The notes under the pieces are model-generated. The model saw only the letters and a program-made list of their open reading frames with translations. It was not told the DNA's origin and did no database searches. Below, in pieces: positions 4,586 through 13,377 of a stretch of 64,000 nucleotides of DNA. The position numbers and the translations under genes were made by a program. Position 1 is the first letter of the stretch; every line of letters starts with the position of its first letter. Source of the stretch: Monocercomonoides exilis PA203 (lineage: Eukaryota; Protista; Preaxostyla); NCBI GenBank assembly GCA_001643675.2, contig LSRY02000033.1, forward strand, positions 682,001-746,000. Direction: 5' to 3'.

Positions 4586-7500
4586 ATGATTGATAAACAT
4601 TCAGGAAGAGAAACTGGAGCAGAAGAGCGGAATGAGTGGATTATTGCAGGCATGTATCGAATATTATCAAATCATAAAGTTGGAAGCGGTTCGTTTGGTG
4701 AGATCTACAAAGGAATAACAATCGCAACTGGAGAAGAAATTGCAGTTAAACTCGAGAAAGTAAGAACGAGACAACCTCAATTGTATTATGAAACAAGGCT
4801 ATATCGAATGCTACAAGGAGGTACAGGGATTCCAAATGTGAGATGGTTTGGAATAGAACAAGATTATAATGTTATGGTGATGGACCTGTTGGGGCCAAGT
4901 TTGGAAGAAGTTTTTACAAACTGTGGAAGGCGTTTTTCTTTGAAAACAACATGCATGCTTGCTGATCAACTCATTTCTCGAGTTGAATATATCCACTCAA
5001 AAAACTTTATCCACAGAGATATAAAGCCAGACAACTTTTTATTGGGAAGAGGAAGGCGTGAAAATACAGTTTATATGATTGATTTAGGATTAGCGAAGCG
5101 ATATCGAGATTCTAGAACTCATCAACATATTCCGTATCGAGAAACAAAAGGAATTACAGGAACCGTTCGTTATGCGAGCGTGAATACACATATTGGCATT
5201 GAACAAAGCCGTCGAGATGATCTAGAATCGCTAGCCTACATGCTAATTTATTTTGTGGCAGGTAATTTGCCTTGGCAAGGATTAAAAGCACATAGCAGGC
5301 GAACAAAATATGCGAAAATTGGAGAAATAAAAATGGGCACACCCGTTGATGTGCTTTGCAAGCATCTTCCTTCAGAATTTGGAACATTTTTAAGTTATGT
5401 GAGAGGTTTGTAATTTATTAAACACAGCCATTTAATAAACGTATAATTTTCAATTAAATATTCTTCCTGAATTTATTTTTTTCTATTAACAACATTTTCA
5501 ATGCAAAATATTTGATGAATCCCGCCTTTATGAAACATACACATACACATCCGCATCCACACAACTTGTTATTCGAAATTTTCATAATAAAAATTCCTGC
5601 ACTATCTTCGAATCGTCATTCTTTCACCAAGCGCTTCGCTTTGACGGGAAGCCAGAATACGGCTACATTCGAAAGCTGTTCCGCGACTTGCTTGCCAAAG
5701 AGGATTCTGTTTATGACAACGCCTTTGACTGGACGCTTGTTCCAGGGGGATTGCAAGGGCTGAGCGAGCGGAGAAAAAGAGAGAGAGAGAAGAGGGAGAA
5801 AGCAGAGAAGATGCGAGAGAAAGTGGAAAAGGAGCCCGACCGGATGTTGGAGGACGGACACGACTGGCACCAGGAGAAGTATGCTGAAAAGCTGACCGAA
5901 AAAGAGCGGTTAGCGCGCCTGCAGCGCAACGAGGAGATTGAGCGGGGGCTGAGAGGCGAGGGAAAGGCAGCGCTGCCAGAAGAGAGGGACACACGGCAGT
6001 ATCGCACAGACGAGCGCAAAGTGGAGACGCGCACAGGCACAGCCAGGCCGCGCCTGACGATCTCCATCAATCCACAGTCGCTAATTATTCCTGCGTTTCG
6101 CGGGGGATCCAAAGAAAACAGGGGGAAAATGGAGGAGCGGAAAGAGAAAGAAGACAAAGAGAATGGGCTGAGGGAGATGCAGGAGAAGATGCTGCCAGGG
6201 AAGGACCGGAACCGGGCGCTTATGCAGCGGCAGATGGGGTTTACGATGCAGCAGCCCAGAGGGATGGAGTATGGGAAGCAAGGGGGAGTGATCCTGCTCT
6301 CGTCAGGGCAGTCGTCGATGCAGTCTCAGGAGTCGAATTCAGAGCTGTCGTCGCAGCAGTCGCTGAAGAGGCGGATGGGAGAGGGTGTGAAGGAGAGGGA
6401 CGGAGGGAAGGAGAGATACAAAGACAGCGGCGTGCCAAATGCGACAGGGATGTCAGTTGCACCGCTCATCGCGACAGCCACAGCGACAGACGTCACGTGG
6501 GGGAAAGAGGGAAGACGCGACAATGCTACACGAGAGGACATGAAGGAGAACGAGAAGGCGTTCTATATGAACCAGTCACACAGACCGATGGGAACTGGGC
6601 AGCGGAGCTCGTTTTTGCCTTCATTTGAGAATCCATCAAGTTCAGCTTATGTCCCAACACGTGCTCCTCCGATGGCTGGCCAACAGACAACAGCTGGTGG
6701 GCAATACACAGAAAACGGGGGAATGCTTACAGCGACAGCTGGACTGCCTGGGGATGGGGCAGGAGGAATGGGAGGAATGGGAGGAGTGAGCGGAATGAGT
6801 GGAGTGAGCGGAACAGGATTCGGGAGGCATCAGCTGCCCCAGGCGCCCGGAATCACAATTGGGCAGATAGGATTCATCACTGTGGAACCTACACGCGATG
6901 CAGCATATAAGCAGAGGCCAATGCGATTTGGGGCTGGGCGCACGTCAGAGATGAATCCTCCATTGCAGAGCACACAGGCAGAGTTTGGGAAGCATCAGAA
7001 GCTGTCTCGATCGCGCTATCAGGTTGGGGATGTGCCCACGTTTGAGCAGATGAAGGCACGAAAGGAGAAGGAGAGACAGCTTCAACTGCAACAACAACAA
7101 CAACAACAACAGCAACAACAACAGCAATTGATGGCACAGAAATCAGGAAACAGAGGAAGAGATGAGGCTGGGCGTGACACAAACGAGATGTCAGATGCCA
7201 TCGCTGCCAGTGTGGGTGCAGCGATTGAGTCAGAAGTCGGACGCGATTTGAGCAGCGGCGGGTATTTCCCTATCCAAAGCAGAAGAGACAAGGACTTCTA
7301 CATCAGAGGCACCGTCCTGCAGCCGAAGGAGGACCAGAGGAACAGAGAAGAGAGGGAGAATCGCTTATACTCGGGATATCCACCGCAGGAGCTGCCTGAG
7401 CAGATCAGAATGAACTTGGGAAGAGACGCGTCAGCACACCCAGTGCATCTGCAGGCGCAGCCGAAGATTGTGGTGGATATTGGGAAGATGATCATTCCAC

Positions 7501-9261
7501 CCTTCCAAGGGAAGCGCGACAAGACGAAGGAGAACAGCGGAGCTGATGGGAAGGATGTTGCACATGCAACGGGAAGAAGTGGGATGAGATCAGCACAAAG
7601 TGGGAGTGGGTATCCAGATGCTGGGTTTGATGAGAAGGAAGGCAACAGCAGAAATCCGAGGGACATTCGCAAAGAGGAGCAAGGTGGACCGCCTGCACAA
7701 GTGGCAGCAGCAGCATCAGCTGTGATGGGGACAGGAAGAGAAGGAGGAGAAGGAGAAGGAGAAGCAGACATTCTGGTGCAGACAGAGACAGACATCGATG
7801 CAAACACCAAAAGTGGAGGAGGGCAGAAGTTTCTCGCGGGCGAAGGCAGTTCTGCATTGGGGAAGCAGCCAGGCGCATTCATTCAGACACAACAGATGGC
7901 GCCTCACCGCATTCCGCTGCAGCCCATTCCTCCATTCCAGTCATCGTATGGGATGAAGAGCCAGAACCAGATGCAAAATCAGAGTCAGAGTCAGATTCAG
8001 AGTCAGAACAAAGAAATCACACCAGCCACGTCTGTTCCGCCTGCTGCAGGGGCGTCGCTGCTGTCTCAGACACAAATAAAGACACAGCCAGCGTCTGCAC
8101 AGAAGACGTCTTTGATCACTCCATCTGCCTCGCTCAGAGTGCGCCAGCCGATCAAGTTGGAAATACCTCCATTCCAACCGAAAGGGCAGGGGCAATCACA
8201 CGCAAGCAAGAGGATGGCTAATCAGTTGAATCAACAGCAACAACAGCAACAGCAGCAGATTCGACCTCAGCCACAATCACAACAACAACAACCACAACAG
8301 GCAGTGCAGCAAGCACAAATGACACAGCCATTGCAGAATACACAGGAAAAGGACTTGACAAAAACAATGCAGAATCTTCAAATACAAACACAGACACAAT
8401 CACAATCACAGACACAGCAAGAGGCAGAGTCAGATGCATCTCGTGTGCAAAAGACAGCAGAGGAGAAAGCGAATGAAGGTGCAACTTCAACAACACAACA
8501 GACGATGAAGAACCAGCTGCCAGCATCGCAATTGCAGGCTCCTCCACAACAATCTTCTTATGCAGCAAACAGAAACAACGGAGCAGGAGAGAATTCTATT
8601 CCAACTTTGACACAGGCTGTCACTTCTTCAGCCATCAATTCTTCTTCTTCTTCTTCTTTGACATCAACATCAACGTCATCATCATCATCATCATCTTCTT
8701 CTTCATCTTCCTCATCCAATTCCACATCTCCTTCATCATCACCAGGGCAATTACAACAACAGACACAAGGAAAGAAAGCATCTCCTCATCTGACCAATCA
8801 AAAACAGGCAATTCCAAAAAATGCCTCATCATCTGCCAATTCTTCTAACACAACACAACAACAACAACAGCAACAGCAATCAACAAAGCAGAATATGAAC
8901 CAGCCTTCAAATAAACCTTCTTCATCCTCAGTGAATGTTGGTGACACTGCTGCATTGTCATTCCCACTTGCTGTATCACCTCCTCCTGAGCCAGCCAATG
9001 GAACAATAACATCTTCAACCTCTTCTTCTTCTTCTTCTTCTTCTACCTCATCATCTTCCTCTTCCTCTTCCTCTTCTCCACCTCACAATGAACAGCCCAT
9101 CTATGCCCAGTTCTCTCCCTCTGAGTCTGCTCCATTGCATTCTGCTGCAGACAACCAGCATCTTTCTTCTCATCAACAAACAGAAGGAAATACAGAACAT
9201 CCAAAAATAGCTGCACATTCATCTCAAAATGTTGCTTCTTCTTTGCCTGCATTTCCTTCTG

Positions 9262-9298
<37 letters not shown>

Positions 9299-10208
9299 TT
9301 CTTCTTCCTCTTCTTCATTGCCTTCTTCTTCCATTCCTTCCTCTTCGTCCTCTTCCTCTTCTCTTCCTCCTCCTTCTCTTCAGCCACCATCAGATATCTC
9401 TTCAAGTGCTGCTGCTCTGCCTGGCAATGCTTCAGACGAAGGAGCAGCACAACATTTCTCATCCACCCCACAATCATCTGCCTCTGCACAATTCATCACT
9501 CCTGTTGCTTCTCTTCCCTCTTCTTCTTCTTCGTCTTCGTCTTCTTCTGCTTCTGCCGTAAATGCTGGACAAATGACACACACAAGCTCCTCTTCTTTGA
9601 CTCCTTCCTCTTCGTCTTCATCGTTTTCTTCTTCTTCCTCGTCTGCTTCCACATCTTCTTCTTCTTCTTCTTCTTCTTCCTCCTCCTCCTCATCATCAGC
9701 AGTTGCATCTCCATCTCCCTTCTTCTCCCCAGCGCTGTCCACCCGCTCCTCTGTCATCACAACCAACGCCACTCTTGCTGACCCAGCGCCTTCTCCTTCA
9801 AACATTTCTCTTTCTCTCTCTTTTGCCCCTTCGCCTGCTCCTTCCCCTTCCTTCAGCCAAATCCCATTGGCTTCCACACTCACCCCGTCTCCTTCTGCTC
9901 CCCGCCTGCCATCTCACACCCCTTCTTCCTCTTCTACAGCACCTCCATCATCGTCATCGTCTTCTTCTTCTTCATCTTCTTTTTCTTCTTCATTGTCTTC
10001 TACCACTTCTTCTTCTTCTTCTTCTTCTTTTCCTTCTTCTGCTGTCTTGTCTCCCACTTCTTCTACTTCATCTGCATCCACATCGTTTCAAAACTCTTCA
10101 GCTTCCTCTGGTCATACAAACACTTTAACACAGCCGCCATTCCCAACATCTTCTTTGGTAAAATCTTCGTTTGCAGAAGAAGTTGAAAGCGAACAGCGAT
10201 TAAGCTGA
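4586..10208 (+). CDS. CK1: Casein kinase 1 (delta/epsilon-like) with a very long Gln/Ser-rich C-terminal tail; exons 4586-5405 and 5632-10208 (~1798 aa)
   Basis: CK1 motifs [60 protein letters not shown]. Intron 5406-5631 (GTTTG...AAG) joins YVR to [21 protein letters not shown]...AFDW, the CK1 C-lobe end, in frame with ORF 5688-10208. A 5'UTR intron at 4431-4585 is possible. Confidence 0.92.
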
Positions 10209-10419: not shown

Positions 10420-11973
<1,554 letters not shown>

Positions 11974-12350: not shown

Positions 12351-13377
12351 TTACAAAATAGCACAAACACCACCACTTGTAATCATCTTCTTGATAACCT
12401 CTTCAAATGCCTCACGAACACCAATATTCTTCATTGCGCTGCATTCCATGTATTTCACAGCTCCGATTTCTTTTGCAACACGATTGCATTCCTCAGGAGG
12501 AATGCATGTGCTTGGAGATGTTTCACGAAGATCGCATTTTGTTCCCAGCAAAACCATTGGAGCTTTAGGTCCCTTGGCTTTTAACTCAGGAACCCACTTC
12601 TTTTTAACATTTTCAAACGTATCTCTGTTATCAACTGAGAAACAGACAAGGAATATATCTGTTCCTGGATATGACATTGGCCTGATTTCATCAAAATCTT
12701 CCTGACCTGAAAAATGAAAAATAATAATATCATTATCACAATTATTCTACTAACAACTACAAACCTGCTGTATCCCACAGTGAAAGTGCTAACATTTTTT
12801 GGCCAACTGGCACTTTGCATGTATAATCATCAAACACACTAAATAACAAAAAATAATCGGTTAGAAATAACAAAATTCCATAAACATAATCGAAGCATAC
12901 GCTGCAGGTTGAATTATAAGCAAGGAAACCGATGAATTGTTTATCAAAAAATATATGAAGAAAAAAACGTGCCAAATTCCTTTTAACAAATATAAAATCA
13001 CAAACTTGGTACATAATCTATGATGAAAATTTAACGGTGGCAGCGTAAAAGTTAAAATTCAAGATCATTCAGATTAGAAAAGATTGAGCAAACCTTTTGG
13101 AAATTCACCTTTCGCATATACTAACAAAAAAATTGATAACAAAATTATGCGGAATGTACGACAAAACAGTTGCAAACCCATTAACAAGCAAGTTTTTCCA
13201 ACTGCACCATCTCCAACAATGACGAGTTTTTTCTGTTGGATCGGACGTGGCAATCAAAATGCAGATGCAACAAAATATTGCAAATAGATGAAAAAAAACA
13301 ATGCGGTTGCAAATGTTGCAAATAGATTTACAATAGAAAAGGAACTTAAACGCTAAACACACTTTGTAGTCAGACAT
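12351..13377 (-). CDS. Rho/Rac-family small GTPase (179 aa); exons 13377-13363, 13232-13178, 13120-13094, 13017-13006, 12901 (1 nt), 12838-12765, 12706-12351
   Basis: Spliced translation reads [42 protein letters not shown]...[29 protein letters not shown]...GTKCDLR...YMECSA...CAIL (CaaX box). Exon lengths sum to 540 nt only when the 1-nt exon is included. Confidence 0.93.

Follow-up and report, generated by a model that had tools for sequence, protein, structure and literature searches.

The codon for Thr37 of MONOS_13320, a gene for a Rho-type GTPase in Monocercomonoides exilis, a protist without a mitochondrion, is built from three exons (A/C/T; slashes mark splice junctions), and an extra C is present in the mRNA. 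This C, at position 12901 of the window, that is, of the whole 64,000-nt stretch of DNA that was analysed, is very probably a genuine and apparently constitutive one-nucleotide (one-nt) exon, abutted by two introns of the U2-type GT-AG class. The one-nt exon of MONOS_13320 seems never to have been described before. A literature search, in which the 2016 genome paper was not included, yielded no paper linking Monocercomonoides or oxymonads to micro-exons.

MONOS_13320 lies on the minus strand and consists of seven exons, the lengths of which total 540 nt (179 codons and TAA). All of its introns are GT-AG introns of 57–130 nt. The database protein of the gene, P0001 (179 aa), contains each in-frame exon peptide as a substring, has Thr as residue 37, and was used as a stand-in in all full-length comparisons. 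The gene is organized as follows.

13363–13377, minus strand: exon 1, 15 nt, ATG TCT GAC TAC AAA, encoding MSDYK
13233–13362, minus strand: intron 1, 130 nt, gtgtgt..acag, indicated by an RNA loose end
13178–13232, minus strand: exon 2, 55 nt, encoding the P-loop, covered by RNA contig pieces at 13178–13232
13121–13177, minus strand: intron 2, 57 nt, gtttgc..ttag, with the joint 13120/13178 in three RNA runs
13094–13120, minus strand: exon 3, 27 nt, YAKGEFPK, covered by RNA contig pieces
13018–13093, minus strand: intron 3, 76 nt, gtttgc..atag, missing in all four RNA contigs
13006–13017, minus strand: exon 4, 12 nt, ATTATGTACCAA, read as AT TAT GTA CCA A, the first 12 of 13 RNA letters
12902–13005, minus strand: intron 4a, 104 nt, phase 1, gtttgt..cctgcag, missing in the RNA contigs
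12901, minus strand: exon 5, the very probable one-nt exon C, second base of the Thr37 codon, the 13th RNA letter in all four contigs
12839–12900, minus strand: intron 4b, 62 nt, phase 2, gtatgc..atttag, missing in the RNA
12765–12838, minus strand: exon 6, 74 nt, T followed by VFDDYTCKVPVGQKMLALSLWDTA and G, RNA contig pieces at 12763–12838
12707–12764, minus strand: intron 5, 58 nt, gtttgt..tcag, with the joint 12706/12765 in four RNA runs
12351–12706, minus strand: coding part of exon 7, 356 nt, from switch II QEDFD to the CAAX box CAIL

The stop codon TAA occupies 12353–12351, and the 3' UTR extends to at least 12200. At the other end of the gene, intron 1 is supported by a 12-letter loose end of RNA contig X1 past 13232, which corresponds to 13374–13363. 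The last base of exon 4 (13006) is the first base of the Thr37 codon and is followed by gtttgt, while exon 6 opens with T GTG TTT GAT at 12838, directly after ttatttag. Between the two exons lies the site acctgcag/C/gtatgc (cctgcag..gtatgc, 12908–12895), in which one base is abutted by an acceptor AG and a donor GT. The C at 12901 divides the gap of 167 nt into 104, 1 and 62 nt, and the AGCGT containing it is the sole AG-N-GT site in this gap, where such a site would occur by chance in 4.5% of shuffles. The initial annotation had placed the exon ends at 13006 and 12838 and the single C at 12901, with GT-AG introns of 104 and 62 nt and a CDS of 540 nt, all of which are exact to the base.

The RNA data are assembled contigs of four RNA-seq runs, all from a single study, a metatranscriptome of 2024 filed as 'synthetic metagenome', which is consistent with, and may come from, the M. 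exilis culture time series of PMC12308965. The four assemblies have zero mismatches to the MONOS_13320 locus. In each of them, 13 letters stand between 13094 and 12838, GTTGGTACATAAT on the plus strand or ATTATGTACCAAC on the gene strand, and they consist of exon 4 in full (12 nt) and a single C. The mRNA thus reads GTACCAACTGTG, that is, GTACCAAC followed by TGTGTTTGAT, which differs in the four assemblies from the alternatives CCAAGTGTG and CCAATGTG. Since the 13 letters equal exon 4 plus C, both the junction giving Ser and the frameshifted form, which the initial annotation had named as the outcomes that would contradict it, are ruled out as the main product, and the mature mRNA that it had predicted, GTACCAACTGTGTTTGAT, is matched in four of four assemblies. 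Inclusion of the C gives YVPTVFDDY, as in P0001, and its role in restoring YVPTVF is borne out both by these RNA letters and by conservation in six further loci. RNA contigs lose rare variants, so that minor skipped isoforms, splicing intermediates and the order of splicing are invisible in them.

P0001 aligns end to end with TC10, RhoA, Cdc42 and Rac1, its best solved relatives (E ~1e-54). It has the P-loop, the switch II motif WDTAGQEDF, a C-terminal CAAX prenylation box (CAIL) and the Pfam domain PF00071 (precomputed annotation). Its Thr37 aligns with Thr37 in switch I of RhoA, which is equivalent to Thr35 of Rac/Cdc42 and is the residue in contact with Mg2+ and the effector. A Thr35-equivalent codon spread over three exons, as originally proposed, is thus what the gene has. 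The Rho insert is a helix of ~13 residues, 124–136 in RhoA. In P0001, the insert (~residues 118–128; window ~12490–12520, minus strand) is 9–10 residues shorter than in RhoA and TC10 and the canonical insert helix is not found, while the other features of the Rho family are present. Because of this strong shortening, P0001 is termed Rho-type and is not assigned to the canonical Rho, Rac or Cdc42 proteins.

The arrangement AG/C/GT is found in six further loci, namely the paralogue MONOS_16771 and five diverged relatives that are ~63% identical in the last exon. The relatives (L007, L008, L009, of which the sequence is the same as that of L010, L011 and L012) are metagenome or SRA contigs from four ENA assemblies and one SRA run, and their one-nt-exon splicing is predicted from the sequence alone. 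Each of the seven gaps holds exactly one AG-N-GT site, every time AGCGT, the chance of an AG-N-GT site being 0.7–4.1% per gap in the six related gaps (shuffles). The upstream intron is 76–104 nt and the downstream intron 48–91 nt long in the seven loci, and intron identity between loci is at the level of shuffled sequences, with the exception of L008 versus L011. The third base of the split codon is T in five loci and C in L008 and L012, and the exon base is C throughout. The second base of any Thr codon is C. MONOS_16771 lies on a different contig (G000:C14:1936600-1937430; L002:1484-2310) and reads ATT CCA A/gtttgt..ttaaaag/C/gtttgt..cgaaag/T GTT TTT GAT with introns of 76 and 52 nt, so that the comparison of Rho paralogues called for by the initial annotation reveals the same one-nt exon. 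The acceptor downstream of the one-nt exon in MONOS_16771 (gaaag) looks weak.

Skipping of the one-nt exon had been suggested to act as an off switch of the GTPase. A regulated cassette of this kind would produce an mRNA lacking the C, in which the frame shifts to CCA ATG TGT ... TGT TAG, with the TAG after 17 codons and a truncated product, and a precedent is offered by plant VPS55, the one-nt exon of which is included in some isoforms and left out of others (PMC8831610). However, the included form alone is assembled in all four runs, although minor forms could escape the contigs, and the one-nt exon and its strong flanking sites are kept across paralogues and species, as for constitutive use. 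Neither a regulatory element nor a stable RNA structure was found near the one-nt exon: the segment from exon 4 to exon 6 has no stable or shared structure in six loci (MFE z −0.95 to +0.34), and whether the one-nt-exon C is paired varies between the six folded loci. The off switch is thus left without support, and regulated skipping is improbable.

An artefact of assembly is more improbable still. It would mean a true intron of 166 nt and a C lost from the edge of exon 4 or exon 6 during Nanopore assembly or polishing, and the assembly of M. exilis PA203 is indeed ONT-based, corrected by Nanopolish and ten rounds of Pilon (PMC8767320). On the other hand, the base supposedly lost would not be in a homopolymer, and the paralogue and the five independently assembled short-read relatives have no base at the exon edge but AG/C/GT inside the gap, with a joint chance below 1e-9 for its presence in all gaps. 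On this comparative evidence, an assembly error appears close to refuted and may be regarded as excluded for practical purposes. Equally negligible is removal of an intron of 167 nt followed by addition of C (insertional RNA editing or non-templated addition) or a non-canonical junction: it would account for an RNA one base longer than the direct join of exons 4 and 6, but no C adjoins either exon edge, so that a shifted junction cannot provide it, the RNA letters are at odds with the Ser junction CCAAGT, and a genomic C with a perfect acceptor and donor, signals that editing would not need, lies in the gap at seven of seven loci, which for practical purposes rules out both editing and a motif arisen by chance.

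With a genuine one-nt exon as the preferred reading, its age may be estimated from the phylogeny, in which the seven one-nt-exon GTPase proteins form one clade (98/97 support) separate from the Rho/Rac proteins of Naegleria, Acrasis, Pelomyxa, animals and fungi. The one-nt exon is accordingly at least as old as the ancestor of this clade. In Pelomyxa Rac1 (L021), Acrasis Rac (L022) and the metagenome Rac sequences L013, L014, L017 and L019, the Thr codon is not interrupted by an intron, and L015 and L016 have a phase-0 intron immediately past the Thr codon. Since an intron within this codon is lacking from the Rho/Rac genes sampled in other eukaryotes, both flanking introns look lineage-specific, and inheritance of intron 4a or 4b from other eukaryotes was rejected. 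The intron between WDTAG and QEDFD (window 12707–12764) is present in both M. exilis paralogues, L008, L011 and L012 and absent from L007 and L009; intron presence therefore changes within the clade while the one-nt exon stays. Introns 4a and 4b have no residual similarity to each other in six loci (z −1.2 to +0.9). Tandem duplication of one intron was rejected as the origin of the pair on these sequence comparisons, yet, given its age, such a duplication may still have taken place.

The AG and the GT are one base apart, and the factors that bind them would be unable to occupy both together, which would make exon definition impossible. Intron 4a and intron 4b would instead each be recognized separately, by intron definition, and taken out successively, the site at 12901 acting like a ratchet site of recursive splicing that keeps one base. 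Ordered splicing under intron definition is plausible for MONOS_13320, and Guo and Liu reason likewise for Arabidopsis APC11, where intron definition and stepwise (recursive) removal are proposed (PMC4674806). The donor after a one-nt exon is deprived of good pairing of the exonic positions −1 to −3 with U1, and it appears to depend on a strong intronic match.

The M. exilis genome gives a single match for U1 snRNA (83.6 bits; G000:C28:313530-313684, L020:1501-1655). The usual 5' end of U1 is AUACUUACCUGG; that of M. exilis is UAACAUACCUGG, with the pairing end ACAUACCUG, and its position 5 is A, not U. This end is therefore fully complementary to GUAUGU, and its pairing with GUUUGU contains one U-U mismatch. 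The donor of intron 4b pairs with U1 at +1 to +5. All ten donors after one-nt exons, seven in Rho-type genes and three in CKS1 genes, have GT[AT]TG (GTWTG), the base at −1 being C or G. Among ordinary donors of the same Rho genes, GTWTG is found in 13 of 22 (Fisher p = 0.018 for the difference, the loci not being phylogenetically independent). This contrast is only suggestive of an intronic U1 match that compensates for the exonic context. The U1 5' end fits the GT[AT]TG donor consensus in all genes examined.

The motif YAGNGTWTG occurs three times in the 64,000-nt window, as compared with 5.9 expected occurrences, and the two matches other than that of MONOS_13320 (6979 and 61155) lie within uninterrupted GC-rich coding sequence. 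The motif by itself is without predictive value. Elsewhere in the window, an open frame of 1,506 aa at 5688–10208 on the plus strand contains stretches of poly-Q and ends in a very long tail that is rich in Ser and of low complexity, which accounts for the markedly negative GC and AT skews at 9.0–10.2 kb. Its neighbour at 10813–11973 on the plus strand looks like a RuvB-like (TIP49) ATPase gene interrupted by an intron.

Candidate one-nt exons of M. exilis belong to at least two unrelated families, represented by the two Rho genes and three CKS1 genes. The CKS1 loci are L023 (G000:C72, ~75.9–76.4 kb), L024 (G000:C50, ~328.0–328.5 kb) and L025 (G000:C13, ~297.5–298.0 kb), and all three follow the pattern GG/gt..tag/ATGG/gt..ag/G/gt..ag/AA CAT TTT (or TT AAC TTT). 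In this pattern, a 4-nt exon ATGG is followed 96–106 nt on by a one-nt exon G (ag/G/gtWtg), and the introns differ between the paralogues. As judged from the gene sequences, the 4-nt and one-nt exons would together build the GW(E/V) stretch, for which both appear to be needed in all three paralogues. Exons of 1–4 nt are possibly a recurrent and tolerated feature of oxymonad genes, a proposal that is tentative. They would then accompany strict intron definition and a U1 5' end, ACAUACCUG, that matches GUAUGU perfectly and frees donors from the exonic context. If this is true, M. exilis offers a natural system in which to study how the spliceosome deals with an acceptor and a donor separated by a single base, and perhaps also the lineage-specific gain of introns beside existing ones.

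Exons of this size are a hazard for annotation. The gene calls P0002–P0005 of the relatives (L007, L008, L009 and L011) start inside introns or read through them, and begin at or after the exon encoding VFDDY. They break at the micro-exon, so that truncated or frameshifted models of such genes are to be expected from automated pipelines. The published proteins of MONOS_13320 and MONOS_16771 both carry the Thr, and the curated models must therefore implicitly include the one-nt exon.

A one-base exon is the limiting case of splice-site recognition. A stable, ancient and conserved case in a deep-branching protist would imply that introns recognized by intron definition are spliced out in sequence reliably enough for an essential codon, that of the switch-I Thr, to depend on it. 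A mechanistic parallel comes from ratchet sites of the Drosophila Ubx type, which are zero-nucleotide exons (AG/GT) within very long introns and leave no base in the mRNA. They share with the site at 12901 the juxtaposition of acceptor and donor and the sequential removal in which the first step regenerates or exposes the second site. Unlike them, 12901 leaves one base, and both of its introns are short (48–104 nt across loci). A one-base exon in a conserved coding region is also found in mitochondrial cox1 of placozoans (PMC5436844), but that exon is organellar, with self-splicing or trans-spliced introns, whereas the introns of MONOS_13320 are spliceosomal GT-AG introns.

One-nt exons were initially called extremely rare. 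They are rare, but nuclear precedents exist in APC11 of land plants (PMC4674806; PMC8831610), VPS55 of plants (PMC8831610) and CYP621A of Fusarium (PMC12940212), and the documented cases, so far from plants and one fungal genus, now extend to Metamonada. The one-nt exon of APC11 (Guo & Liu, 2015, PMC4674806; PMC8831610) resembles that of MONOS_13320 in being constitutive and nuclear, placed between AG and GT of U2-type introns, needed for the reading frame and kept in orthologues, and it is missed by standard annotation. The two are in different genes, of a plant and of a metamonad protist. The identity of the base is irrelevant to splicing in APC11, while the Thr codon of MONOS_13320 admits no base other than C, and the former has been validated by reporter assays and the latter by RNA-seq assemblies and comparative data. 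VPS55 has a conserved one-nt exon with a well-conserved donor hexamer (PMC8831610), which parallels GTWTG in ten of ten donors here; it has alternative isoforms, whereas no alternative form of MONOS_13320 is found among the RNA contigs. In CYP621A (Nelson & Syed, 2026, PMC12940212), as in MONOS_13320, the base contributed by the one-nt exon is the middle one of a codon within a strongly conserved motif, that for Gly of PKG in the former and that for Thr of switch-I YVPTVF in the latter, and both cases draw on orthologue comparison together with transcript evidence from SRA. The authors call the one-nt exon of CYP621A the second example (PMC12940212). CYP621A is a fungal P450 and MONOS_13320 a protist small GTPase, and, unlike the CYP621A case, that of M. 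exilis is found in two Rho paralogues and in a second family, CKS1.
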